Position numbers and translations under genes: made by a program | Shown here: positions 6,135-63,737 of the stretch, piece by piece | How the letters are laid out: each line of letters begins with the position of its first letter | How positions within the stretch are numbered: the stretch's first letter is position 1 | Source: Bugula neritina | Taxonomy: Eukaryota; Animalia; Bryozoa | NCBI GenBank assembly: GCA_964035545.1 | Contig: OZ037765.1 | Location: 7,140,698 to 7,204,697 of the forward strand | Direction: 5' to 3' | DNA length: 64,000 nt | Notes under the pieces: model-generated | What the model was told of the DNA's origin: nothing | Seen by the model: only the letters and a program-made list of their open reading frames with translations | Databases searched by the model: none

Positions 6135-9100
6135 ATGGATGCTGTCAAAAGGCACTTACTGTTTGATGATAAGCTGCAGCAGATTCAGGTAAACTAAAAG
6201 AAATAAACCAGTAAAATTTCACAATGATTGTCATAATAAATCTATATCTCAGCATGGAAAAATAAATCAGTTTCATTCATAAATCAATTTCCTATCAATC
6301 CTGTTACTATGTAAAGCACTTAAAAAAAATTGTTAAATAGTTCTACAAGTTAATCTTCTGCTACAGCTGTGTATCTACATCATCTGATTCATCATAAAAG
6401 TCCTTGACTTTTGAGTTGCTGTTTTTATCGAGCATCGGTATGTGCACTGAAATTGTCCCATTTGTGCTGCTCACTGTTCGTCTTTCTGACGACGTTTCTC
6501 TGTGTCTTCTGAACCTTTTACAGAACGTCTTAAAAAAAACTTTTCTGAACTTCTGCCCAAGAGCACAATATAGAATGAAGTTGATTGCACTGTTTAGTGT
6601 CACCATAAAGTTGCGAACAATAGAGACTATCTGCCAGTCAATGCTCTTGGTCACCATTTTTCTATCAATTCCAATTGCCACATTGTAAAGCAAAGCCGGT
6701 AACTGCAATAAGAACAAATTTTTGCAGCTAAAATAAATGATTTTATCAAATATGTTATTGAAAGAACTTGTGGATTACAACTTATATTAATAACTAAAAC
6801 ATTTTAAAAAGATTTAAGATGAAATATGTAAATAAAACAATTTCATACTGATATTTTGTTTTCACTCAATAATTTAGTTCATAAATAGATGGGTGTTTGT
6901 CAAATTTTATAAATAGCAGTATAAATAAAAAGCAGTAAAAGGATCTTTTCAAATTTCCAAGGCTAGAAACCGTCATATATTTTATGGAAAATTATACAGT
7001 TAGCCTTGGAATTTATTTAAATCAAAGTATATTATCTCAACTGGTGGCCAAGTAAAAGCTGTTCAGTCTTATTCATGAAGTCTAATACTGACTTCATGGA
7101 TCAGGTGAATATATAATATTGTGTGGCATCACTCTCTTCTGTCAAGTCAAGGCTAACTAAAATTGTTCTTAAAAACTAATTATATTTTTAAGCATCATTG
7201 CAATGTAATACCTGGTTTTTCTAAGACATATGTAAATAATCGGCAGAGTAAAACTGCCAGACCCCAAATTTTACATTAAACTTGTAAAGCTACAATTACT
7301 TGCAATAATTCATTTTCTAATATTGTCTCAACCAACTGAAAAATCGTCTGCTTAAATTTGGAGAAACATAGGTTTGCAAGGTTAAAGTTACCTGACATAT
7401 AATGAATACAGCCACTACTGACACAAGCATTGTGGTTATATTGTTCTCCTTGGAAGTTTTAGCTGTGTGAGACTCATTTCTCATACTTTTCCTTTCCTTT
7501 GCTGATTTTCTTACTGCTTGTATGAGGAAGTAGTTCAACACAGTTAGTAAACACACCGGAATAATGCACATGACAGTCAAATACAATCCTGAGAAATATA
7601 TGGACTCATAAGCCTGATTTGCCAATACTTTGTTCTGGATTGCCCTATATGATGGCAAGTTAGTTCCAGGTATGAAAATGATGGTCATATTGGCATCTCT
7701 TTTTATTTCGCTCCTGTACTCAAACCATCTGGAGAAGTTGTATACCATTGAGAATATCACAACGCAGAAAGTTGTAATCCTGGCACGTTTAACTGTACAC
7801 AGACTAGAAGCCTTCAGAGGGTTTCTCACAGCAATGTACCTCTCCACAGTGAAGGATACGGTTATCCATATAACACACGTCTGGGCTATCAGTGCTAAAG
7901 GGTACACGTACACAACTACATATGCATGAACCAGCTCCTGGTATACAAGGGAAAGGGGTTTCAAACAAACCAGCAATGTCGTACAGATCAGTACCAGAGA
8001 GTCAAAGATTGCCAGCGCTAATAGAAAACAGTTTGTTGAGCTCTTCATTGATCTTCTTGTTAAAACATACATGACCAAGACATTAGAGATTAAGCCAAGA
8101 ATGCAAATAATAAGCAATATTATTCCAGATAAATAAAATTCTAAATTTTGGATTAGTGCATCTCCTGTCTTCTCCGCTTGAGTAAGAACTTGCAAGAATG
8201 TCATAGAGCTGTTAGCACTGCTTCTGTGCATCTGGGTATAGTTCGCCATGATCAAAGCCGACAGCCAGTTGTGGAGCCAGAGGTTGAAATTAATTGCTGC
8301 AAAGTGAATATGGCTCAAGTTAGATATAATCTTTGTTTTAATCTGCAATTAAGCTTACTAGGAGCAGTGCATTTCAGGGTGTTACATCAAAGTAAACTAT
8401 AATTATCAAGCTATCTTAAAGTTGCACATAGCAAGGCTAGAAAGCCTGCTTGATCTTGTTAGGCTTCTATGAAAAGAACTTTTGGTTTGCCTTCAACACC
8501 TAATCTTATAAATTTCTATTTCTACTTTTAGGCAGTTCACGCATTGTACAAGATGACTGAAACAAAAGTTCGTAAAATGTCTATAATTGGCTTTCAATCT
8601 ACCCACCAGGTATATTCAGCAACTTTTAGCCAGTGAAAAAGTATCATTTCTTTTAAACTAGTTTATTTTATTTTAAAAGTAGCAAAAACAAAATAAAGAT
8701 CTCAAACCTTCAATTTATATTTTGTTTCCTGAAGTTATTTTAAAACTATAACTTTCAGTAATAAAAGTTGTCAAATTACAAAAGAGGAAGAAATGTTAAG
8801 TTAACTTTTAGAGGCTTCATTTATACATAAGCGTTCGAGTTATTTAGGCTGATATCCTAGACTCTAGAGGAATAGGTATTCTTTCAGGTAATAGTGTGAA
8901 ATGAAGGAGATCTTTATGTGGAATATTTTTTAAATGTTGATAACCTACATTGTATAAATAATGAATGACAGTGTGTGCAGCTATGGACAAGTTGATTGCC
9001 AGATTCTCTGTGTATAAAGTTGTAATTTACACTGAGCAGCTTCAAGCCATTGTAAATTAATAAAAGGGTAATCGTCTTGTCATTTACATTAATTGGATGT

Positions 9101-46569: not shown

Positions 46570-49500
46570 TTAATTTTCCTTATCACTGCTTATTGCATCG
46601 TCATCTGCACTAGCTGAGGGGTCTTGACTCATACTCTCTCCCTCCTCATCGGAGTCATCCTCCCCATCAAAAATAAAGAGTCGTACTCTTCTGTTAGATA
46701 GCATCTACAACATCAATTTAATTGTTTACCAGTATAAATACAAAAAAAAAAAAACCACACTGTTTTGTCCAATAAAAATAATCTCTACTTCATTGCAGTG
46801 TGTGTTCAGCAGCATAGAGCTGGTGAAAATGTGATGGTTACATTTCAAATTTAAAAAAAACTATTTTCACTTGGTATTGAAGCCTATCTACTCCACGATT
46901 TTCAGTTTAATAAATCATGCATGTGAATAATGAAAAATCAATTGTTCAAATTAGGTATATAATTTTTTACCATTTTGCTACCCAAGTGGAAATTTTCAAA
47001 TAAGCAGTTGATGTTATATGTTCCAAGTATCAGTTGATGCACCTGTTTTATCCTTTTTTATAAGTTTAAAAATTCACACAAGAAATGCATTTTAAATAAT
47101 TCAAATACTTACAACACTGCTGATATCTCGTTTGCCACTTGCACTTATTTGCACAGCATTAAACGCATTCTGTAGCACTTTGATGTAGGATGGACTCACG
47201 TATTTTCCTGCCTCAACAGCTTCACTGAAATAAATATGCAACAGATGCTCAAATAGTGACAAGTTTAATTTTGTTGGCATTGTCTGTATATGCAGGTATA
47301 AGAAGAGTTGATCATAAATATATATTAGCCAATTTGCAAGTGGTTGTTTTATTGGTTTGGAGTTGTTTTCTTTTATTATTGATTACTGGCGAAAGGCCTA
47401 CTTTCAAGTGTATTTTGATAATTAAAATTAATTAATTGTACTTTCTTTAAACAATTTTTGTCAAGAGGTAACCTTTAATCAAATGATATACGAGACAAAG
47501 TGCTAAAAAAGTATTTATAGTTGAAACAGTAGCAGAGATTTCCATACTTGGTTCGTGCCCAGTCCTGTGAAGTTAAACTCTCAAGATTGAGCCTTACAGT
47601 TACAAATGATTTGTAGCCCTCCATCTTCTGCTGAAGGAGCACTACTATTTCCTCATCCTGGTAGTAATCAAAGTCGACTATCCTATGTTGTTGGCATCTA
47701 CAAAAATTGCATTTTAGTTAGATTCACATAGCAAAAATAACTTTTAGTAACAAACATTTCCTTCACAGACATGCAGTGGCTATAAGAAATCTGCCAGAAT
47801 TCATGGAGGCAATGATGACCATGGTTAAAATAGTGATATAGTTGTTCCTTTTTGTAAAATTCTTCACTAAAATGCTAGAGAATCTAGAAGTTAAATTTCT
47901 TGATTCAAAAGGTCAAACTAATAATGGTAAAATGTGTTCTTCAAAACACATCGTTTAACTACTAAATAAAACTGCCCTTGAGTAATAATGCTAAAGTGTA
48001 CCCATAAATGTTTTGTTTACATGCTGAAATGTCTCAACTAACATAAAGCCATGTCAAAAGTAACAGCTCTACAAATAAAAATGGCATTTACATTTTGTTA
48101 TTAGCCAGTCCATGTATTACTGAGGTTTGTACACTACTTTTATAAACTATTAAAATAAAACGCATGTTAGTTTTTCAAATGAATAAGTAATGGGATGCGA
48201 TAACACATTTTTGGAAAATATAATTATTAATTATAATTGACCAGGCAAAATATCTGAGTTGAATAAAATGGCTTGAAAATCATTTTTAAGGTTGTTTGGA
48301 AACTGGAATAAATCAATATTAGAGTTGCGTTCTCACAACTACAAGCTGATTGGCTGAAAAGAAGAGCGTTGTAAAGTAGGAAATATTTGGTGATGATAAA
48401 TAGCTGTATAAAGTTAGCAGTGTCTACTTCAATAAAATGGCTCAGTGGTTACACACGGGAAGGAAAATGGAAAGACTGGTGGTAGTTTTGGTAACTCTTA
48501 TAAGCCTCACTCACACAGTAAGTAACTTTCTAATTTAATATGTACCAGCAAGTATTCATTGGGTTTCAGGTCCAACAGTTGAAGCACTGCTTTAGCATTG
48601 AGTTTATATTTGATGCACCTATCAACAGTTGAAGGATAAATGAAGGCCTATATCCATATTATCTTGTTTCAAGGTTACTAAAATTAGCCATCGAAAAAAT
48701 ACAAATTTATGTGATCTAACTGATTGTTAAATTGTGCGCAGTGGGTCTTGGAAAGAAAAACTTTCATTTTTAAAACTTATATTTGAACTTCTCATTTTAT
48801 AAGCTTATGCTGCTTTTGAAAAATAGACTGTATTTTGAATATCATCTGATTTTTAAAAAAATAATGACATCAAACTTAAAACAGCTAGAACTTAAATATT
48901 TAATAGAATGGAGTATACACCAAACTTTTTCTGTTAAATTTTAAACGACTGAAAGGTCAAGGTAGAAGTAATTAATAGTAAGCAGTAACCAGGAGGTGAT
49001 AAATCAACCCCAGATTTGAGCATCAAACAAGAACCTGATGTTGCACAATATATCAGAGTCACCTTGTTATTCTTCAATTAACCATCTTTTGTGATTGTTG
49101 ATGGCTAGGCGGAGATAATCATGAGATTGAAAATATGGATATAGCAAAAGGTTATTTTATATTTACCAAACCTAAGAAATTCCAATCATGTTTAGGTGAT
49201 CATAAAAATAGCTAACTTTAGTTTCATTGAGGCAGCAAAATTTACACTACATGGATGCCACAGTATGATATATTGCTATTGTTTATGTAACAAAACTAAT
49301 TTTGAATCATCTCCATATAAATATAATTGAACCTGGTAAAATAATGTAACCCTAAATTAAAATCAACAGCTATAAAAAGTGATTATAATTGTAAATAATA
49401 TTAAATTTATTTTTACATCACCCTGACAGCTGTGAATGGACTGAACCTACTCCAGAAGCTATTAGTAATTACATATCATTATTTATATATGTTATTTTCA

Positions 49501-52500
49501 AGCAGTTGGAGATTGAGATATGAAGAAGATAATTAGTATTATTTCTCAGAAATAGCTGCAATTAACACTTTGAATAACAGACTTACAGTGTCATCTACAG
49601 TCAGTATGTCAGAGATAAGCAGTTTATTAGATCAAATGGCACCAGGAGACAGTGCTGCCTTCATGACACTGACAACGGGCACTTCACACTGAAGCTGACT
49701 ACCATAACATAGGATTACAGCTATAGTAACAGATATTTTAATGGCCAGTAAAATAGAATAAAATTCAAGCACTTGCTATAACGTTTCCATGGTGATGTAG
49801 TAGAGATAACATAGTATGGTAAAGGGGCTATTTATTTCAGTAGCATGATTGTCTGCCGAGATTAAAAATTTAAAAATTTCATGAAGACTTTAGATAAATT
49901 TCATAATCAGCTGAGGGTAAATTTTCTTCTGACATGCAGTTGACTAATGTTAGTTGTTTCTCAAAGGATAGAGGCTTTGATAGACAATTCATACCACAGA
50001 ACAGGTTCAGACTGAACAAAGAGTTAAAAAAAGACAAGGATGGTGGGTTGCTGTGGTAATATCCTGAGGTATAAATCCTAAGAACTAATATGACTGCACT
50101 ACACACCAAGCCATCAATAATGTATTGACAGCTATAATAGCCGTGTACATTTGCTAATATACTGGAGCTAAAACTTAATGGCTGGGCTAATAAATTATTA
50201 AAGATTAGAGTTAAAAAGTACATTGCATTCTAAATAAATAACTATTTCCCCTTCCCCCCCAAAAAAAAGCTAGTTATAAAATATTTTATACTTTTACACG
50301 ATTTCATATTGTAAAGCTAAACTTTTTCTTGGTGCAATATGGCGTGGTGGTTGAGTGGGTGAGCTAGTTACTTGCTATACACACAATTTAACAAGATATG
50401 TAATCATTTCAACTACTCAAATATCAAAAACATTCAAACTGCCATTTTATTAGAGACCAAGCAACCAAACAAAGCTTATCTTAGATCTTACTCACTCAAG
50501 TAACTACAATACACAACAAGTGTGGCAATAAAACTCTCAAAAGACAACAATTTGCCTGATGATAAAAGCATTTCTCTCCATGTATGAGTATTATTTATAC
50601 CTTAAGGGTCAATAAAATACTGCCATTTTGCTGATAACATCAATTCCTTGTTCAAGTCATCAGTTAATGGCACCTTCTAGTTACAATATTAAATGTTATT
50701 TAGACTAGAAATCTTATCTGTAAAAACTCTTGGAATATTGTTTGAAATTCAATTTCTATGTTTTAGTTAAAGTTGCCCACATGGAAACAGTTATCAACCA
50801 GCTACCCTGGCTATAAGCACAAAGGACAGGGGAAATATACAAACTTAGAACTGTTTCTCAGACTAGGCAAGGCACCTTTACCAGACGAGGATAAGGAAGA
50901 TACAAGTGCGCTAAGATTATCTTTTGCCCTGAATAAGTTGGGTGGTTCCCACAGACTGGGGACAGATGAGATCCACATTTCCAAGACATTTGACCATGAC
51001 AGTGTGAAGGGCAGAGACGGTCAGCAATACATATACAGAACCATGGCTTTCGGCCCTTTCCTTGCCATGAAATATAAAAGTCCAGAACTCATTAGAACTG
51101 ACCCTCTGGACCCAGATTTACCAAAAAGAACATTGAAAGGAAAGCGTGGTATCGTCAGATTCGTGGCATTTTATAACAAAAACAAGCACGCTGATGCAAG
51201 AATAGCATTGTGGGACTGTGACCATGTATTCGAGGCAAGAAACCTTGGCAAGATGCACCATCTTATTTCAGTGGAATTCTGGGAACTGCCAGGTAAGAAA
51301 TTATAACCGTCTACTAAACAAGAACACATTTCTTGTGGTATTTAATGTATGTATAAATAATGTTGAAACATTTCAACATATAAGTACATAATGATGGCAC
51401 GCCAGGATCAACATATATATAGCTGTGTATACTAAACAAGGAAATCCCATATAAATTATATACTCAGACATTAGATCTGGTGGGAATCTGGCATAGAAAC
51501 AAAACTTGGTTCCCAGTGACCCAGTGAATATGAAGTGCAAAGCATGAATTGAAAATTAGTCATTATAACCAAAGCATAGGAACACTAAAGCCTTTCTTGA
51601 TAATATTTTGACTCACTGGTAATAGAGGTTAGCTTCCTAATATATTGTATAAGAATTGCTCTTCTTACAATTACATCTGCTGCATGGATGCTAAAGAGAT
51701 AGTGTTGAATAATTTATTAGAGCAGGAAAAAGATAAGTCATAATTATAAGTCCCAGAATGCACAACTATATTAGTCATTCACTGTATGTGCAGCACAAGG
51801 TGGTGTATATGTAGCATAAAGCTATATAAATGCAGCATAAAGTAGTATATATCCAGCATGCAGAGCTAGTGTAGACTGTAGAGCAACCTTTCAACTATCC
51901 ACCAGTGATTCTTTGAACAAAGAGATAAATTTAGCTGTGCCTAAAGATGCTATCATTGATAAAATAGTTGGAAAAGGAGCAATGTTTACATAATACTGGG
52001 TGTGTGGGCCTATCAAGTGACATCTGCTGTAATAGTCATGGTTCTGGTAAACACAATAGTAAGTTATACCTACAGATAAGATACCAGCTTGAACACGAAC
52101 AGGTGTTCATCTGCCATGGGGCATAACTCCCACGTCCCTAGCCAACAGGCAGCTGGTGAAAAGTGTGCAGATTGGCAAGTGGCTAGTATTGTAACTAATT
52201 CACTGTTGACTTTACAAAATACAGTTTATAATCTAACAATTATAAGATACATTATTCACTCCCAGTCCAAACATTACATGAAAACTAACTGCTGTTCAAT
52301 GGCCCTTGAAAGTTTTGGAGCACAAAGTAGAGGCAAACATCTTAAGAGCTCTTACAATAGGATATGCCTGATTTGTGAAGGTAGAAATTGGAGAGGTTAA
52401 TGGGATGTAAATATAGTAAAACATTTCTTGGATCATTGTGAGTGTGAAATGGGCAGAGCAGATGGGCTGCCAGAGTTGGTCATGTGCAACGCTAATATTG

Positions 52501-55500
52501 TTTTTACAGTACAATGTGAGACAAAATATCCTTTTCAAGCGTATAATTCATGCACAAACATTTTATGTCACGATATTGCAGGCCTTTGAGTCCACGTGTT
52601 AATATTTCTATGGTAAAAGAAAAGAAGCTTTCATCAAATGTAAATACAAATACTCCGCAGGTCACTAAAATCATAGTTGTTCAAACAAGATGTAAAAAAC
52701 CTTTGATTCCATTAGCAGTAGGAATATTATAATGAAGAGTGAAAGAAAAGAGTTTTAGGATTGCAAACTCACAGATAAATCATGGTTTGAATGCACCTGT
52801 AAAGTGAACAGCTATCCGCTGTGTATGGATGATTATCAGTAGAAACACAGCGTGAGGGATTCGTTATCATCTACTCTAATATACTCTACAATCTAGACTC
52901 TATAATATACAACTCTATATAGCACTTGAGCTCACAATCTGTCATGACTAGCTAGCCTTTATACTGTAATGTTAATTATACATCTTATCATAGCCAGTCT
53001 ACTAAACTCTCTAAGCAAATATACACACTGGTTGAATAATAATCTAACTAAATAGTACAGATGGGTGTGATCGCTTATTTATACTCAACTTGAGTCAAGT
53101 TTTTCAATTTCTATCGTATAGCAACACACATAGCTTTACACCAATTCAAATTATTTCATTTCAGATTCCAGTTGCCCGTCTTGAACAAAGGATGATACTG
53201 AAAGCAAAGGTAGTATATGGATATCAAGGGAGTGGAGTAGAGTCAGATGTATATAGAAACCTGCTGCCTTGTAGCAATGAAAGACAGCACCATTTCAATT
53301 ACATCACTTAATCTCGAACTTTGAATTACGTAAGGGGGGGGGGGGGGATTAAAATGTACATATTATATTTTTTAAATTTTGAAACTAAGTCTGATTTCCT
53401 GACCAAATTATAATTATGATGTTGAATGCATTTATACACTTATATACTCTGTAACTTATCTAGTCTTTATATGTGTAATGAGTTACTTATGTAATCCAAT
53501 GAATAATTATTTTGCCGGTTTTTTTTCAATAAATTCAGATACGATTGGTAATCCAAAGGTGGTTGAAGTATTGTTGTATTACATAACTAAAAAGACAGTC
53601 AATGTCTTCCATTCCGTGCTGTTAGGTGCCCAAATCAGCTTATCTCATCTCTAAGTTGACTGCGTGGACACTGGTTGCACACGTTGCTCACATTGGTGTG
53701 AATTTCAATGTATGGTTGAACTCAGTTGTGATATTTCACAAATTTATGATAGAGAGAGGCTTCATTTCATCTTTTGTGTCACGCAAAGAAGGTTTTATTA
53801 TATTTATGAATTTCAATCATCCACTTACACTACATTCAATAAATAATATAAGTTGACATTCAAATCTTGTCATTGAACAACAATGAGAAGATTTTCTTTG
53901 TGATTGTTGAATTTAATTACATAAACTGTGGTCAAACTCCAAGCTAGGTTATTTCAAAGTACTATTTACTAACTTTGCAGTGGCTCACACATCACTGGTG
54001 ATTGGCTAATCAATTATAAAAAAGAACTTTTGACTGCTGTGATTGGTTGAAAAGAGGCAGGTGGTATTAGGTGGCAGATTATTATAATTTTTGGAGATTA
54101 AGCAACGAAGCTGTGATAACATTTACATTTCAATGGATAGAAATGACAATATTTGAAGAGAAGCTCATCTCTCAGTACACAGCTACAGCTAAGAGAGCAG
54201 CTGCAGTATTTGCTTTTGATGGAGAAAAAACAGAGAAACGTAAATTCTTTGATACGGTCGTTTGTTCTCACCCATTAAAACTGCTACAAGCACTCATGAA
54301 GTGTACTTCAATTTGCTCTCAACAACTGTGAGGCCAGAGTATTGTAGTTAAAACCATAATAACTGATCAAGGAGAGTATGAGTACCACAGAGGTGCCACC
54401 ATCAACACTGTGGCCGTCAACTTCACAGCTACTGTAATTGTTAGCCTTTGTTATATCCCTTAATTACAGCAGAGATATGGAAGACATCAGATGTTTTTTC
54501 AGTATAAGATGCTATCTGGCTACTGTCACCCAGCTCTAGTGTGGCCAAAATCATCTTTGAGAATTTTCCAATAGCCAGAAATGTAATAAAAAGAGATTCT
54601 GCTCCATTAGTCATAGATGCATGGCAAAGCAGTTTATAATTGAAAGAATGTACAAGTAAAAAGATATATAAACCAATTAATAGGGTGGAAATGATTGAAA
54701 ATTAATATTCATGAATGTCATATATAATGAGAAATACTTGCTATTTGCAAGCTTTCACACTGCTCTAACAGTAAGGTAATAATTACTCATCTATATTGTC
54801 AACTAGCAATAACCATATTGGGAGTATTATAATTGGAGAAATTTCTTTTATAGTTACAATCTAGTTCTCGGTATATAATATGCACTTTTTGCTAATTCAA
54901 ATCAAATCCCTTAAAATTTGAAAGGTTAATAATTGCAGTTTGCAAATTCAATATTGTCTTCGATGCTTTCAGTGCCTTCTGGTGCTACCAGTTCTGAGAG
55001 AGGAACTTACAAAACAATTTGTTGACTAGAACAGAGTCAATTTAGGCAAAAACTTGGCTGTTTTTTGGTGTCAACTAGCTAGAAGTAGTTCAACAGCTTA
55101 CTGTCTTGTGCAAAAAAAAATCAATTTTCTTACGAAATATTATTTAAGGAGATATTAGCCATGGCCAGAGAGTAGCCACGCCAGACATTGTGAAATGCCT
55201 GTCCTGTATCCATGTCCAGGTGACGGCTTAGCATTTTTTATAGTATAAAAACATCCTTATTTGTCATTGGAATTTTTATTCTGCTTACCTTATAGTATAG
55301 CATTGCTTTCTTAGAGATCAAATTTGAATATGTTAATAAAAATATGAAAATACTCAAACAAAATTCCTGGAACCACCTTAAAACTGCTAATCCAATAGCA
55401 ACCCTCTTGCCCACTGTATGCTAATCAAAAAAGTTATTAATGTATGCACTTATTGCAGGATTACTTATTAAGTTGAAAGAAGTTCTGGACAAAATTCTTT

Positions 55501-58500
55501 TGTAGAGAATATTCTGTCTTTGTTATAGTACAATTACTGTCTCAGCAATTAGAATGCTTGGTTTTACTATAGTAACACAGACTAGACCTTAATCACTATA
55601 TCTTTCCATAAAAATTTTTCAATTTATATTTCAGTAGACAACGTTTTGGTAAAACTATATACAATTTAGAGCTGAACATTTCACTCCAATATCCTCAATG
55701 TTCAATGCTTTACTCCCAGATATCAAACCTAAATAGTATAATAGTAAAGGTCATTGGGTATATACATATTATATTTTATACTCATTTGCCACTAAGCTAT
55801 AGTCATGTCTTATATGGGTAGCCATGCAGCACTGCGACACATTCTGTATGGTAGGTCTCAAATGATTCTGTATTGTAGGTTAATTTAGCCAAGAATTTAT
55901 TCAGAAAAAAGGGAAGAGCCGCTGTAAGTGACACTGACAGGGCAGTGAGGGGGAAACTTTTCCAATTAGTAGAACTAATATGGTGTCTATTCACTCTGCT
56001 TTGGCACTTGACTGTTTATTTATTCTGGAAGTCATTCTGTTAGAAAAATGTTAGCTAAAAGAGCAGGTGGTACTTAGCAGTGTTTAGAGCAAGATTGGCA
56101 AAAGAATTGGCAATAGTCTGAGAATATCTAGCTGACATAGTCTGACAAGCTTCACTTCACTTGCTGCGACTAGGCAGAAATTTCAGTTACCCATTAATTG
56201 CCAATTTAAAAGAGATTTTAAAAATGGGTAAATATGAATCTAGTTCAAATTTAAATTTATAGTTCAGCAATACATTTGATCTTAAAGGCAACATAAATAA
56301 TGCTTGTTATAATAAACTTCTGGTTAAGATTAATGATCTTGTAAATAGATGGAGCTGTACAATTCTACTAGCAAGGTGTATTAGTATGGCTTACAGCTAT
56401 GACTGCACGACTATGTAGTATAACTGTACAGACTGGACTTACAGCATGATGTATTACACTTTAATTACTGATGAGTGGCGAGTGAGATGGACAGGCTATC
56501 TGTACAGTAATGCTTTACCATTACATATTCAGTCTAACTCATGTTTTAGTGAAGACACCTTTACACTAGTATTATGATTACAGGCTACATGTTATTTCTG
56601 CATTGCAGTTATAATTGTCTCAAAATTATCCTCCCTAACATACCCCCTCTTCTCACATACCCCCTTTCTCATATCCCCTCCCTGACATACCCCCTCACTG
56701 ACATACCCCCCTTCCCACAAAGAAAAACCCCTCTCTCGTCAACACAACTAATAGCTACTCTGTCTCACACCTTAGATCTACCAAAGTCTTAACTAATAGT
56801 GTATACAACGTTCACTTGCTAACTATTTTTAGATTTTCAAATTTTTAAAACATCTTCACTTTGTCTGCTTTCATTAGAAAAACAGCTTTTACAGTTTAAT
56901 TGCCAAAGCATACACCAAATCAACTTTAGTCTCTCTCAGTCTCTTACCAGCATCAATAGAATACAATTGAGATACTCAAACGAGATATGCTTAGAGAGTT
57001 GATGGGCTCTTAGTATTTCAACATGAAATTTACTTTAACAAGTATTCTTAAAATGCACTGCAATTATTATTTAGCCATATAACAACTGGCAGAATTTGTT
57101 ATCTCCACCTGCTTCAAAAAGCAATTGCGGTAAGTTATGTACACATTGCCTCATTGCATCAAGAAGTTAGGAAAGATAACTCCACAAGTTAGAGGGATAA
57201 TTAATAGTCACAGTTTGTTTTGCAGAGTTTTCTGTTCATATATCATATCACAACATATTACGGAGAATGTACTGCTGCTGCTCACCAGATACCGCAGTTA
57301 ATGCAAGAATAGAATGTAAGCTACAAGCTTTATATGGCACTGAGGCTAAGAAACATGAACTTACGGATACAGTTCTTCGTCCTGCCCCAATAGACCAAAT
57401 ATTAGCTCAGTTTTGTATAATTCACTGCAAAAAAACAAATAATTACTGCTCAATTCTAAAACCTTCAAAATTTCAATAAAAAAAATACCTCATTTCAACA
57501 AATTTGTTCAAACTGAGTCATTGTCAGAACATGTGAGAAATTCTACTATCTTAGCACTATGAACCACAGCTTATGTTAGCTGATAACAGAAATGAAAGAA
57601 AGATACCTTATCAACAGTTTGATAAAATAAAAGTAACATATGGATACACAATGCACGAGATAATAAAAGATATATCTAAGATATGATATACTCCGAGACA
57701 CAACGTAATACAAAGTTCACTTTTTGATTCTTATCCTCTAAAAGGAAACAATCAAGTTTTCCGTTTACAATACAGCAGCTAACATCAACAAGCTAGTTGA
57801 CTGTCAAATCTTCAATACCTGCCATGGTTTAGAAGAGCTAGTTTGGTTACAAATAATCGTGATTCGGAGTTGTCTTTCCCGTCTATCAAGTAAATGGAGT
57901 ACATGTTTTGAATCCCATCGTTGTCTTTTCCTGGAAACCTGAAAGACAAGAGAGGAGATTTACCACAGTTAATATAATGCATACGACATCCAGAGATGAG
58001 CTCTCTGTTGCTGGAGGAAATATTATCAATCAGCTTAGCAATTTAAACTTTGGAAGAGAAGGAGCAAAGTAAGCTGAATATACAGAGACTGTGTCATCTA
58101 AATCAACTTTAAAATAATTTTCAAAGTATCTCTCAAAATTAATCGTAAATGCAAAAAATACAACAGCAAAAAATAGGCAATATCATGAACAAGTTACTAA
58201 GACAATAAAGTATGAAAGGCGTTAGAATTAAGTCTTGATTTTGTTAGTCAAATAGTGAACACATGTATGTAAATAACATGACTATGTGCTATATATACAC
58301 ACTTTATACACAATATACACACACTATATACACATTATATACACATTATATACACACTATACACACACTATATACACACTATATACACACTATATACACA
58401 CTATACACACACTATATACACACTATATGTATATAAACTCACTGTCTCAACTTCTGTAACTCACATTTACCGATCAGTTTGTGTGTAGTTTGTATCTCCA

Positions 58501-61500
58501 CCTCTTTAGCTATTGTCACCTGTATTCATACAATTCAGTTTAAAATGATCTAAACAATAGAACGTAATGCATAAACAAATAAAAATTTAAAAAATCATCT
58601 TTGAATGAATCTATTTATAAATTAATTTCAATAGAAGAATTTTATCATCAGAATTAAATATCATTATTGATAGAAATATACGCTTTATTGATATTGTCTT
58701 AAATTAAATTTTAACCATGTACCAGTATTGTATTGGTATTCTATTCTGCAATAGCAAATAAAAGGAAGTTACAAGGTGTTGCTTTAACTTGTCACTAGTA
58801 GGACATAGAATATGTGACAAGTCATGACCCAACCCATACACATCCGTGATGTCATTCAGTGAAGGTCATTGGTGAGGTCAAAAACACATCTAGCTATTAC
58901 TTGTGAAAAAATAATACAGATTAACAATAGCTTCCTCCTCTAGACAGAGAGCTTTTCTCAGGAGTCGTGGCTGTAACCCAAAGTGTGAACTCTGATATAA
59001 CACACAATATCCTACCCTTAAATAACGTAACACAATTTTATAGCCTGTCTATGTAATGATAATATACCGTGTGCCAGCATAGAATACTGTGCTCACTGAG
59101 TATAATAGAGACAGCATAGGTCAAACTTGAGTATAGAAATACAGATGTTTGGCATGGTGCCACATTAGATGGATTTCCGCATACGAAACCGCATTTGTGA
59201 AAATTCGCTAAGGGAGCTACCTGCCACACAATGCTTTGTCAGCGAGAGTGGAAATTTACTAGCCAATGGTATTTGCTAATTATTATTTCGCAAACCCACT
59301 TTTTGAGTTTAAAGTTTATATTTTCTAACAATTTCGTTTTTCTACTTTCACAGCAGTATAATCCAAATGTTCTCAACAGACGCTGGAAGGCAGTAGACGT
59401 AACTATGAAAACAAAAGTGCTGTTGACGAGCAGTAAAGTCAACTGCAAATATCATTGGCTAGTAAATATCCGCTCCCGCTGACAATGCATTGTGTGTGGC
59501 GGTTTCACATGCTAAAATTATATGGCCCCACTTTAATAGAGTTGGTTACGACTTAGTCTATCAAAGATCTGAACAGAGATGCAGCCCACTTTTAAAAGGT
59601 TACAAACTTACTGAGGGGGTAGTCAAGGCCTCCAATAATTTTTCTGATAACTGTTTGTAGAGTTGAATCAATGATTTGGTGGGCTGTGCTTTGAACATGA
59701 ATTGGCTATCTACAACAAAGCATCACTGTAGTCCTGAAGCAGTAATATTCAAATGGTTTAGGTTAACTTCATGATAATCTGCAACTTGAAAGCCATAAAA
59801 ATTGACCAGCTACAAACTTCAACTTAGCAAATATTTGAAATGGTAATGAATATAATTTAGCATAAGTCATTCAACTTACATGCTATACAATCACAATGAC
59901 TTACTGAAAAATGATAGAATTGTTAAATATATAGAGTAATTGTAAAGCTTGCAATTAATAATTAATTGTTATATCAGCATAAACAATACTTTAACTTAAG
60001 CAAGTGTGATTTTTACAGCAAAATTTCAAAGTTTTCAAACTAAAGAAAACTTTGCATTGCAAAAGTTGCCAATTTTCTACAAAAGCTTTTGACAAATAGA
60101 CTTTAATCATTACATTTATAATTAACACAATATACTCATAAACATTAGCTAATAACATCATTTTAATTCTCATTAAAACTTGTACATTCCTACTTCTACC
60201 AGTGGAAATTACCAGATAAGTTGGGACAACTCTGAAATGTGTTCCATAGACTGTGATCTGCAGGTTTGGGTTGGCAGGTGAGGTCAGCATCCTTCAAATA
60301 CTGACCTACTCTTTCTAACCTGATGTGGGAACCATGGTCCTAAAATAAAGTACAAATACACTGTAGAATCAGTCTTTAAAACGCATTTCGACATCTTAAT
60401 CAAAATTATGTGAATATAAGATAAAAATTTAGTTGGGAAAATTTTGATTTTATATTATCATGAGGCTACAACTTCAACTTTAACTAGACTTGGCACAAAC
60501 TTTTGGTTAAAAAATTGTTTGTTTCTATTGTTTTATAGACAGGCATTTCAGAAAACAGCCAGTGACCACAAAAGTCATACAGTAAAACATGCCTACCAAA
60601 GAAAGTTCAACATATTGCAATGATGTTCAATAGTTAGACTAAAAAGCAATTATTATAAATGACTGCATCAACTGGTAGAGTGATATTCTACCATCATTAC
60701 ATAGCTGTTGTAGTGAGAGTAAATAGCTTCGGCACTGCATGTGTACACGTAGACAGTGTGAGTAGTAATAGAACATGCAATCACGTGTAGCAGTTTCAGT
60801 GGTACAAGAGTTGCACATACCTCTAGTCCTTTGAAATTGTCGTTTAGAAAATCAGCTACGTCACTGTAATCAATGGAGGCGTAATAATCAGGAACAGGCA
60901 GATTGGAGATTCTCAAAATAACTATAAAAAAAATATTTAAAATTTTTAAACATAAACTAAAGATAACTTTGTCTAACTATTTAATTTAAACTACCTACCT
61001 AAGCCTCTCTCTACAAGTAGGATTAAGTCACACCAAGTTCATGGCTAGTCAAGTCAAATCATGACTCACACAAAAGCACTAAAAGAAGTGAAATTCATAT
61101 AGAATAAAAAATTGAGTCAATAGTTGTAATAGCCATTCAAATATTAACATACTTATTAAAAATATACAAATACATGTAGTTAAACATGCTAATAAGTTTA
61201 GAAAATGATATACCTGAATCCTTTCAAATCTATATACATATATGTATTTATATTAACTGAATAACATCCAAATAATACAGTCAAAACATTTACCTAATTA
61301 CAGCAGTCCTTAAATCACCTATATAGTAACATTGGCAACTTATTGCTAACTTGACTCGAAGTAATTTTTATTAGAATAATTTTAAATAGTCATAGTTCAA
61401 TAGATTGTCTTTTTCTCAAATTAAATTGGGTGATTGCAATTTTCTACTCATGTCAAAATTTCAAAAACCTTTGTGCATTTGAAATAGTCAAGTCTTCAAC

Positions 61501-63737
61501 ATGAGCCAGGGCTGTGCCTTTGAAGATGTTACTGTCAAACGCCATGTGCCTTTTCAAGGTATGCATTTAAATATAGATTTAGTTATGACATCAAACCAAA
61601 GACTCGTAAAGTAATAAATTAAACTTAGAAATACTAACCAGTATAGAGCCAATAGGAGAAAGATTTACTAGTATAGAGCCAATAGGAGAAAGACTTACCA
61701 GTATAGAGCCAATAGGAGAAAGACTTCAGATTTTTATTTCCATTAGATAACAGTCTGTATAAAAAAAGGCAACTATGAAACTTGCTTTAAGATAAAGCTA
61801 AACAGTCGAGAGGGACACTATACGCTTTTATTTCATCAAATTTTTTACTCAAATAAATATTTGTTTAGCTTTTAAACAGAAGCTTTAAATGAAAATTTTT
61901 CACGTAAATAAACTTAAAGCTCATAATTCAATATTTGAAAAATAACATCCATTTTAGTTAGGGCCAGATTATTCTGCTACATGAAATACAAATACTGCAT
62001 TTTCAAAATTCAAACTTAATACAAAACAAAACCTTTAACTATATTTGTAAGTTTTATAACATCTCAAAAATAAAATACTGTCTGTATAGACATATAATAT
62101 GTCGTACATATTTTAGTTTATAGATATGCATTTTCAACTGCTCTATTTTATTCAAGGGAGCAGCCGTGGTCTAGGGGATAGAGCGATGGCTTAATAAACA
62201 CGAAGTCATGGGTTTCATTGGTGTTGCTAAAAAGAACATTTAGTCATCCTTTGCCACAATAATGAAACCGTCCTTAGCCCACTTTAAAAAACACTTTCTA
62301 TCAGGGTTTCCCACAGGGACAGCGACTATAAACTCACGCGAGTTTTTGTACATCAAATTCAAATAAAAATAGGTAAAAGCTAAATAAAACGAGCTTTAGT
62401 AGCTGATCAACGAATGCGCCAATTTCATATATTACTACAGTTTACTTGTTCAAGCTATCATATACATTGCACGGCATCTGTATATCATAACTATCAGTCA
62501 TACTAAACCTAGAACTAACACATACCCTTGCATTTCATTTATTTTCAGTCTCAGGCTGGCACACGCATACAAAGCAGACTCCACGCTGTCGGTGTTTAAC
62601 CCTATGACGCCGAAAGTGTCCGTCCATTGAGAAAGGCCGTGCAGGTCATTCAGATGGTAAAATATTGCCTCTACAGCACTGTGGATATAAAAACAAAATA
62701 TCTATCTAAATAGAAGACCATAACATTATCTAAGTTGATAAATGACAGGCATTTTATTGGAAAATTTAATGCTTTGTACATATTTTTTATCAAGTTCAAT
62801 AATACCTCAATTCATCTTACTCTATTATGTAAAGTATAAAAGCTACCCAATAAATATGTAATTCAAGCCTCAATATTATCTTAATACTTTTCAAGTATAG
62901 AACAATATTAATTAATACAACTTTAAAAAAAAGAGAAAGTGGTCTAAACAATCACAACTAATGCATATGCCTGAAATAGGCATCAAATTGTGGCGAAAAT
63001 AAATTGCAGTAATCTAGAAGAAACAAAGTTATGCATTAACAAACAGACCACATTGAGCAGTAAATTTAAATTTTAATAAACGGTGAAACTATGACATCAA
63101 ACTACAACAATACACAAAACAAAACTAGTTAGAATAGAGAGTGGGTGTACCCCTGCATGTTTACGGTTAGTAACTCCTGCATAGTCTTGTAATACGTCTG
63201 CAGAGTAACTCCTAACTTCTTCATACCCCTTTCAGTGATGGTGTCGGTTAGAAAAACCTTCAACTCTTCACTCGGGGTGCCAAAGAGCAGCAGCTCTAGA
63301 AAGTCGTTCAACACTGTTCCTTCCCCTGCAAGCTAATACAACAACACATACTTTTATCATGCTTTATTCATTGCAGCTCATGATAACATAACTATAGTGC
63401 ATATCACATTATAGCGCATATCAAACTATAGCGCATATCACATTATAGCGCATATTACATTATAGCACATATCAAACTATAGCACACATCACACTATATC
63501 ATGCTGCACATTTTATTCAACTAGAATCTAGATATTAAAACATACTAAATATTACAGCACAGCAAAACCTTTCCAAACATTAATAAACTATATACTTGCA
63601 ACTATGCAAGACTCAGAGATTGCTTTTGGCACTAACTCACCTGTTTTTGTGTAGAAAAATGATTGAGTTTGCGGTCTAGCTCCAACAAACCATCTTCCCA
63701 AGCTTCAGTCATCTTTGTAATGCTGGCATCACAATGC
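46570..63737 (-). CDS. ANAPC4: Anaphase-promoting complex subunit 4, 3' part (gene starts beyond the window end)
   Basis: Approximate exons 63641-63737 (MTEAWEDGLLELDRKL), 63151-63332 (DFLELLLFGTPSEEL...GMKKLG), 62526-62679 (FYHLNDLHGLSQW), 61699-61754 (KSFSYWLY), 60821-60921, 60213-60339 (RLERVGQYLKD), 59613-59710, 58443-58519, 57819-57938, 57365-57424, 47548-47697 (DFDYYQDEEIVVLL), 47113-47224 and 46570-46704 (RVRLF...acidic tail). They match recalled human APC4 motifs in order. Confidence 0.93.
48437..53184 (+). CDS. Secreted Tae4-family (T6SS peptidoglycan amidase effector) homolog, dae4-like, catalytic dyad substituted; nested in an ANAPC4 intron
   Basis: Exon 1, 48437-48517 (MAQWLHTGRKMERLVVVLVTLISLTHT, donor GTAAGT), is signal-peptide-like. 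Exon 2, 50767-51292, carries the domain: LPTWKQL...DTSALRLSFALN...SVKGRDGQQYIYR...LKGKRGIVRF...ARIALWDC...VEFWELP. Recalled Tae4 reads RPAF...NACPIRMSYVLN...TVTGSDKKRYMFR...FAGKQGIIIF...GHVTLWNG...ATFWSL. Probable exon 3 is 53165-53184 (DSSCPS*). Total ~208 aa. The domain call is firm; exons 1 and 3 are inferred from splice signals and phase. Confidence 0.82.
58292..58430. repeat. ~11-bp tandem repeat (TATATACACAC)
   Basis: Repeated CTATATACACA units. Confidence 0.9.
59152..59505. mobile_element. MITE-like element related to 4519-4926, with an internal inverted repeat
   Basis: Starts GCATGGTGCCACATTAGATGGATT, the same terminus as the 4519 MITE. Contains a ~55-bp inverted repeat, 59223-59276 versus 59446-59500. 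Confidence 0.65.
61637..61726. repeat. 30-bp x3 tandem repeat overlapping an ANAPC4 exon end and splice donor
   Basis: AC(C/T)AGTATAGAGCCAATAGGAGAAAGA(T/C)TT three times. Confidence 0.95.
62156..62347 (+). mobile_element. tRNA-derived SINE, copy 4
   Basis: GGGAGCAGCCGTGGTCTAGGGGATAGAGCG...CACGAAGTCATGGGTTTC...GTCCTTAGCCC...CACAGGGACAGCGACTATAAACT. Confidence 0.75.
63388..63498. repeat. 17-bp minisatellite
   Basis: CACATTATAGCGCATAT-like units, ~6 copies. Confidence 0.85.

Follow-up and report, generated by a model that had tools for sequence, protein, structure and literature searches.

An expressed Tae4-like gene without the catalytic dyad is nested in ANAPC4 of the bryozoan Bugula neritina

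The stretch of DNA considered here, referred to as the window, comprises 64,000 nucleotides of the bryozoan Bugula neritina (GenBank assembly GCA_964035545.1, contig OZ037765.1, positions 7,140,698 to 7,204,697), and positions are counted from its first letter unless another contig is named. Exons of the gene ANAPC4 occupy the minus strand of the window, and a small gene of three exons lies between them on the plus strand (Table 1). [quoted passage not shown] The gene is expressed, spliced and maintained by selection, and both residues of the catalytic dyad of Tae4 are replaced in its product.

The features that the first-pass annotation had ascribed to the nested gene are all present in the sequence on inspection, including the polypyrimidine-AG acceptor and the G|GTAAGA donor of the central exon, the upstream leader exon and the micro-exon ending in DSSCPS and a stop. 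The product of exon 1 is the leader (MAQWLHTGRK)MERLVVVLVTLISLTHT, in which the bracketed part precedes the second ATG. As only about 30 nucleotides separate the TATA box from the first ATG downstream of it, transcription may begin near 48435, and the true start of translation may be the second ATG (MERL...). The acceptor of exon 2 is a pyrimidine-rich tract, ...tttctatgttttag, ending in tag, and the donor reads g|gtaaga. The landmarks of this exon are Ser47 at the place of the former nucleophilic cysteine, Arg145 at the place of the former histidine, and Cys151, which is specific to the animal clade described below. The open frame of exon 2 extends over 179 codons and is the second-longest in the window, where about 0.014 frames of such length are expected by chance at 33% G+C. 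The GC content of the gene equals that of its flanks. Exon 3 contributes the second cysteine of the mature protein. The 3′ untranslated region contains a run of about 15 G at 53334-53348, of which a relative of about 90% identity, introduced below, has a shorter, interrupted version.

Table 1. Features of the nested gene and of its host gene ANAPC4, in window coordinates
Feature	Position	Strand	Remarks
Promoter-like elements	48349 (inverted CCAAT, ATTGG); 48407-48412 (TATAAA)	+	Read from the sequence; putative function
Exon 1, coding part	48437-48517	+	In-frame ATGs at 48437 and 48467; phase 0 donor gtaagt
Intron 1	48518-50766	+	2249 nt, GT..AG
Exon 2, whole Tae4-homologous domain	50767-51292	+	175 codons + 1 nt
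Intron 2	51293-53164	+	1872 nt, GT..AG, phase 1
Exon 3, coding part	53165-53184	+	Phase 1, (D)SSCPS, stop at 53182-53184
3′ untranslated region	53185-53550	+	AATAAA at 53528-53533
ANAPC4 exon	47107-47217	-	tblastn to Watersipora locus L007, 1279-1389, 65% identity, E 2e-11
ANAPC4 exon next to the nested gene, on its 3′ side in host orientation	47548-47697	-	AG/GT borders, frame
Short host exon 5′ of the nested gene	57365-57424	-	AG/GT borders, frame fits 47548-47697; too short for a homology test
ANAPC4 exon	59603-59722	-	tblastn to Tubulanus host gene, locus L010, 13543-13662, E 6e-5
ANAPC4 exon	62531-62695	-	PF12896 positions 124-175, E 1.2e-10, 41.7 bits
ANAPC4 exon	63144-63326	-	PF12896 positions 68-128, E 2.1e-11 (G000:C1:7203841-7204023)

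The host gene is recognized from several exons. Apart from the two clear matches to PF12896 listed in Table 1, weaker ones occur at 63635-63736, and the exon encoding the N-terminal WD40 part is located just past the end of the window. On the other side of the nested gene, the exon at 47548-47697 matches by tblastn the DNA within the annotated ANAPC4 gene of Watersipora (E 8e-15) as well as the host gene of Tubulanus (E 3e-4). The sole Pfam match of this 49-residue exon is PF23405 (WD40_APC4_C-half), a weak one with E 0.012 and below the threshold; no match was found for it among the PDB sequences, and a six-frame search of the whole genome for PF23405 returned nothing. Joined to the short exon at 57365-57424, it reads ELY.|CQQH in one frame. 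With ANAPC4 exons on both sides and on the opposite strand, the nested gene is placed inside ANAPC4, in the region coding for the C-terminal half of the propeller. The antisense nesting proposed by the first-pass annotation is thus borne out by the PF12896 exons upstream, the Watersipora-matching exons downstream and the shared ELY.|CQQH frame. A second match to ANAPC4 (PF12896) is present on a small contig (G000:C318:7969-8346, plus strand) and contains seven in-frame stops; it would be either a degraded copy or a match running through introns.

The transcription of the nested gene was followed by comparing contigs of sequencing runs with the window region 48300-53300 (5001 nt). The runs X2 and X4 are of the DNA type and X8 is an RNA-Seq run, while the RNA label of X9 is a guess made by run-typing. 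The junction 48517/50767, with GT..AG borders and 2249 nt skipped, is found in one X9 contig, and the junction 51292/53165, with GT..AG borders and 1872 nt skipped, in another, so both splice junctions that had been predicted occur in contigs which are likely derived from RNA. Intron 2 is present within single contigs of X2 and X4, which identifies the X9 joints as splicing rather than a DNA variant. An X9 RNA contig starts at 48460, and the one with the second junction extends about 228 nt beyond 53300, to about 53528, which places the 3′ end near the poly(A) signal. The transcript k-mers are also found in RNA-type runs of unchallenged animals from three studies. Therefore, the gene is an expressed and spliced nuclear gene.

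A further contig, the 7040-nt Logan contig L003 (SRR4020085, from X8), has intron 2 removed and intron 1 retained, and it reaches window position 57394, inside the proposed ANAPC4 exon at 57365-57424. Coming from another study and running from the nested gene into the host exon, it provides independent evidence of the contiguity of both, as the first-pass annotation had assumed. In its introns, the version of the locus in L003, X2, X4 and X8 has an identity of only about 90% to the window. It is carried by runs with the organism label of the source run and by the 2016 'symbiont metagenome' runs, which agree with the metagenome study of B. neritina (PMC5041132). As far as the sequences tell, a single organism label covers two lineages, cryptic species or haplotypes that are deeply diverged.

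The relationship to Tae4 was examined with exon 2 alone in the family, fold and profile searches, and for comparison with a spliced protein, the natural database entry P0001 was taken. The Pfam profile Tae4 (PF14113) matches exon 2 with E 1.3e-7 and 32.1 bits against a cut-off of 27, and the match covers profile positions 3-125 of 125, which confirms that the Tae4 motif blocks noticed earlier in this exon are real. An AlphaFold 2 model of exon 2, built with 20 homologues, has a mean predicted local distance difference test score (pLDDT) of 86.5. When this model was compared with the PDB by Foldseek, the top 11 matches were all Tae4 crystal structures, with E from 5e-8 to 2e-6 and template modelling (TM) scores of 0.6-0.76; they come from Salmonella, Enterobacter, Serratia and Agrobacterium, and the next match has E 0.19. 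The alignment of profiles by hhalign with 20 canonical Tae4-like proteins gives a probability of 99.65% with E 5e-25, and its 169 columns begin at the LPxF..YP motif of the N-terminus and extend to the FWE motif of the C-terminus. Since both end motifs are spanned, the whole of the bacterial reading frame is represented in exon 2, to which exons 1 and 3 were added. The identity of exon 2 to the solved Tae4 structures is 15-19%, and phmmer of exon 2 alone against the PDB sequences gave nothing better than E of about 0.9; the relation was found by the profile and fold searches. The Tae4 family and its papain-like (NlpC/P60) fold are therefore recovered by the hidden Markov model, by the comparison of such models and by AlphaFold with Foldseek, in the way suggested by the first-pass annotation. 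The neighbours of the gene are ANAPC4 exons on an animal chromosome and give no T6SS context, and no search aimed at Tai4 was made. Judged from its profile and predicted fold, the gene descends from bacterial Tae4 and is a Dae4-type domesticated gene which fails the enzymatic criteria of the family.

This failure concerns the active site. Catalysis by Tae4 of S. Typhimurium depends on Cys44, His126 and Asp137, and alanine substitution of any one of them abolishes the toxicity (PMC3695027). Three alignments were used to find the equivalent positions: a MAFFT alignment of 115 family members, a profile alignment with the PDB Tae4 structures, and hhalign. The nucleophilic cysteine aligns with Ser47 in MAFFT and hhalign, the catalytic histidine aligns with Arg145 in all three, and a conserved glycine of canonical Tae4 aligns with Cys151. 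R50, S52, N56, L148 and W149 are common to exon 2 and canonical Tae4. The earlier description of the gene as a domesticated bacterial T6SS toxin stands as regards the Tae4 ancestry, supported by Pfam, Foldseek and hhalign; the part concerning a toxin or amidase does not, as the dyad reads Ser47/Arg145.

The extent of the loss was followed in a broader set of relatives, 119 in all, which were obtained from 1.84 billion representatives by searching exhaustively with HMMER. The canonical relatives (n = 58) carry N-[TA]-C..R.S..LN and G-H..LWDG. In the animal clade (n = 45 representatives), position 47 is occupied by S, T, A, D, G or K and never by cysteine (0/45), while LWDC is present in 45/45. 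Such variability argues against Ser or Thr as a replacement nucleophile. The residues R50, S52, N56 and W149, which flank the old active site, are invariant in the animal clade. In a tree obtained by a quick maximum-likelihood search, with no named outgroup and with nvDae4 of Nematostella vectensis not included, the clade without the cysteine forms one group with a Shimodaira-Hasegawa-like approximate likelihood ratio test (SH-aLRT) value of 92. Its mollusc and annelid branches retain the histidine, and the arginine is found in the branch of the bryozoans and the nemertean (SH-aLRT 96). With the cysteine missing in the whole clade and the histidine also missing in the bryozoan branch, the aligned residues indicate that the protein cannot work as a papain-like cysteine amidase, and this loss of the dyad argues against peptidoglycan-degrading activity.

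Two more Tae4-like groups were noticed among the relatives, on long metagenome contigs: P0055/P0057/P0062 and P0056/P0064/P0081 (loci L014 and L015). One of them is without both the cysteine and the histidine, and the other keeps the cysteine without the histidine. In the quick tree, the two combined are sister to the animal clade (SH-aLRT 98). The contig of L015 is gene-sparse and that of L014 denser.

The disarmed reading frame is nevertheless retained. Comparison of exon 2 with the roughly 10% diverged L003 reveals 17 synonymous and 2 non-synonymous differences, and the ratio of non-synonymous to synonymous substitution rates (dN/dS) is 0.028. The gene is under strong purifying selection; it is clearly being maintained and is no relic.

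The additions on both sides of the bacterial frame would serve secretion and supply a cysteine. The hydrophobic core of the leader, LVVVLVTLISL, consists of 11 residues with a mean Kyte-Doolittle value of 3.18, and on inspection threonine stands at both -3 and -1. An equivalent leader exon occurs in orthologues of five phyla, and the protein is presumably secreted. The mature protein contains exactly two cysteines, Cys151 and that of the micro-exon, both specific to the clade. The latter is placed 3-9 residues past the exon 2/3 junction in all spliced or annotated orthologues. The co-occurrence of Cys151 with the conserved tail cysteine suggests a disulfide in the secreted protein, and a bond between the two is probably the simplest reading. 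The tail exons of mollusc and annelid orthologues comprise about 75-82 aligned residues and are rich in His, Arg and Lys (chiton L008 21713-21958, annelid L009 15300-15545, cuttlefish L011 26368-26592), and the bryozoan tail is reduced to a few residues after the conserved cysteine.

The location of the gene was compared among related animals. In the bryozoan Watersipora subatra, the orthologue lies inside ANAPC4 on the opposite strand according to stored gene calls, and the same arrangement is found in the chiton Liolophura sinensis (Mollusca) from stored gene calls and Pfam. In Tubulanus polymorphus (Nemertea), gene calls and tblastn place the orthologue inside a gene of 787 residues, whose exons match the ANAPC4 exons of the window on both sides of the nested gene. 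In the annelid Paralvinella palmiformis, the orthologue is convergent with ANAPC4 and separated by 1.5 kb from its annotated 3′ end, and that of the cuttlefish Acanthosepion pharaonis (Mollusca) adjoins a gene fragment with the APC4 C-half domain, both judged from gene calls and Pfam. Therefore, the synteny in relatives, which the first-pass annotation had named as a check, consists of three cases inside ANAPC4 and two beside it. The linkage in the chiton, annelid and cuttlefish rests on stored gene calls and Pfam matches, and tblastn of the host-gene exons of the window against these three loci gave nothing. The gene proves less hidden than had been assumed, since the annotations of Watersipora, Liolophura, Tubulanus and Paralvinella contain orthologues of it under the name of uncharacterized proteins.

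The exon layout is shared as well. When each protein was searched by tblastn on its own locus, three exons were recovered in six species of four phyla: a leader exon, one domain exon ending in FWE.P, and a tail exon starting with [DG]-x-x-C. The match to Watersipora is 69%. Together with the junctions observed in X9, this common layout upholds the claim that the gene is genuinely integrated and has spliceosomal introns, a leader exon and a micro-exon for the tail. The same layout and the linkage to ANAPC4 across phyla are explained most economically by one insertion with one set of intron gains, and an old insertion before the divergence of bryozoans, molluscs, annelids and nemerteans is the most likely history suggested by these comparisons.

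A paralogue is present elsewhere in the genome (G000:C2:1918430-1918945, minus strand; L002). It is 51% identical, has serine and arginine at the catalytic positions and shares the three-exon layout, and it differs from Bugula neritina EB796_019845 at 7 of 172 aligned residues. Its neighbours are CASTOR1-like, Rpp14 and ankyrin genes and not ANAPC4; its place among unrelated genes marks it as a dispersed duplicate. Within the genome, neither another Tae4-like locus nor a copy whose dyad is intact was found. Another subject is the open frame of 343 codons at 7320-8348 on the minus strand, which is the longest in the window: it matches the 7TM receptor families PF10324 (Srw-like, E 7e-23) and PF00001 (rhodopsin-type, E 8e-17), and is probably a single-exon gene of a neuropeptide-type G-protein-coupled receptor.

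The explanation that we favour, with a probability of roughly 0.6, is that of a functional secreted Dae4-type gene which was inserted once, lost the dyad, and now encodes a protein that binds peptidoglycan or bacteria without cutting. The bacterial Tae4 frame would survive as one exon, to which a eukaryotic 5′ exon would add the secretion leader and a micro-exon the cysteine that bonds to Cys151. Inserted once, before the host phyla split, the gene would be transcribed antisense within the ANAPC4 intron and spliced at both junctions. The secreted protein would bind the stem peptides of peptidoglycan, or bacteria, with no cleavage, and its role may be that of a sensor, an opsonin or a blocker, similar to the non-catalytic PGRPs. 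Binding to stem peptides is suggested by R50, S52, N56 and W149, which are shared with bacterial Tae4 and stay invariant. Several points weigh against this explanation. Peptidoglycan binding is an analogy for every member of the clade, inspection was the only basis for the signal peptide, the tree comes from a quick search with no named outgroup, and the Paralvinella gene is adjacent to the annotated ANAPC4 model and not nested in it. Moreover, the mollusc and annelid members keep the histidine, and serine occupies the nucleophile position in many of them, which would allow a Ser-His mechanism in those lineages, and the invariant His62, His164/165 and Cys151 could in principle build a new active site. 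A more detailed history, in which the gene entered the ANAPC4 intron in a stem spiralian more than 500 million years ago, lost the cysteine early and was kept in at least five phyla as an antisense nested gene for a secreted, disulfide-stabilised pseudo-amidase, is put forward tentatively and is, in our judgement, somewhat harder to believe than to doubt.

These latter residues lead to the alternative of a still active secreted peptidoglycan hydrolase, comparable to nvDae4 or tick Dae2, that uses another nucleophile, either Cys151 with a nearby histidine or Ser47. The retention of the fold and of the groove residues, the strong constraint (dN/dS 0.028) and the invariant or nearly invariant state of Cys151, His62 and His164/165 in the clade would all agree with it, and degradation of peptidoglycan is established for known Dae proteins (PMC8713801; 10.1101/2020.04.10.036376). 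We nevertheless consider such activity improbable: both dyad residues are replaced, position 47 accepts six different residues across the clade, Cys151 is probably engaged in a disulfide with the conserved tail cysteine, and the homologue of N. vectensis without the cysteine was itself set aside as not predicted to be catalytic (PMC8713801). The re-use of the Tae4 scaffold away from the bacterial wall, for example in the extracellular matrix, adhesion or signalling, deserves more weight, although it is still unlikely. It would account for the early loss of the catalytic residues in a gene retained for very long afterwards, for the long basic tails of the mollusc and annelid orthologues, and for the transcript k-mers in unchallenged RNA-type runs of three studies; the invariant R50, S52, N56 and W149 are easier to explain by the recognition of the same ligand, and there is no positive evidence for another one. 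Finally, the locus could be a transcribed relic or pseudogene, a bacterial contamination or a misassembly, as the loss of the catalytic residues and the intronic place, where spurious open reading frames and contaminant inserts can hide, might be taken to indicate. This is scarcely credible in the face of an intact 175-codon frame against 0.014 expected by chance, the low dN/dS, two GT..AG introns removed in likely-RNA contigs, a GC content equal to that of the flanks, independent contigs from other studies of which one reaches the ANAPC4 exon, and orthologues in the same host gene in other phyla. The contamination, pseudogene and chance-frame readings were rejected on these grounds, namely the frame, constraint, splicing, GC content, independent contigs and orthologues.

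If the more detailed history, from a stem spiralian onwards, is true, the gene would represent an unrecognised lophotrochozoan-wide family of peptidoglycan sensors or binders of bacterial origin. Its place in ANAPC4 would then rank among the oldest nested arrangements conserved around a gene that was acquired horizontally. The locus provides a candidate for a new class of invertebrate pattern-recognition or bacteria-binding proteins. It is an unusually clean and dated example of the conversion of a bacterial open reading frame into an animal gene, with one exon for the frame, a leader for the predicted secretion and a tail for the putative disulfide, and ANAPC4 with the nested dae4-like gene offers a deep microsynteny marker for the comparative genomics of spiralians. 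Since Bugula neritina relies on a defensive bacterial symbiont, a secreted protein which binds the cell wall would be of interest for the control of that symbiont. In the literature searched, no description of a lophotrochozoan-wide Tae4-derived clade without the cysteine, or of its nesting in ANAPC4, was found, and nothing relevant on Tae4 in Bryozoa or on a gene nested in ANAPC4; Chou et al. 2015 may list some of the members as dae4.

The closest structural counterparts are the bacterial Tae4 proteins (PDB 4j30, 4hff and 4jur of S. Typhimurium, 4hfl of Enterobacter cloacae), with which the product of the nested gene shares the fold, the extent of the domain and the R, S, N, GxxGI and LW motifs. 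In contrast to them, the bryozoan gene is without the catalytic cysteine and histidine, contains introns and a leader exon, and has gained Cys151 and the tail cysteine. The non-catalytic peptidoglycan recognition proteins (PGRPs), such as insect PGRP-SA and PGRP-LC, have an amidase fold, have lost a catalytic residue and serve as peptidoglycan sensors. The likeness to them is a functional analogy only, as their fold, that of a T7 lysozyme-type zinc amidase, is unrelated and there is no sequence or structural relationship. Among animal genes, nvDae4 of N. vectensis is likewise Tae4-derived and provided with a secretion signal, like the one recognized by inspection in the bryozoan gene. It cleaves peptidoglycan and kills B. 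subtilis, and the C63A substitution abolishes its activity (PMC8713801); unlike the bryozoan gene with its missing dyad, nvDae4 keeps Cys63. The same study contains, in the second N. vectensis homologue already mentioned, a member without the catalytic cysteine. Tick Dae2, a further T6SS amidase effector which an animal has domesticated and secretes, illustrates the divergence of dae genes from their bacterial ancestors; Dae2 differs in being derived from the Tae2 family, enzymatically active and acquired far more recently, about 40 million years ago (10.1101/2020.04.10.036376). The dae genes are a textbook example of bacterial weapons taken over by animals, and those studied so far are active enzymes, whereas the gene nested in ANAPC4 appears to be a weapon which, after an early disarming, has remained under strong constraint.

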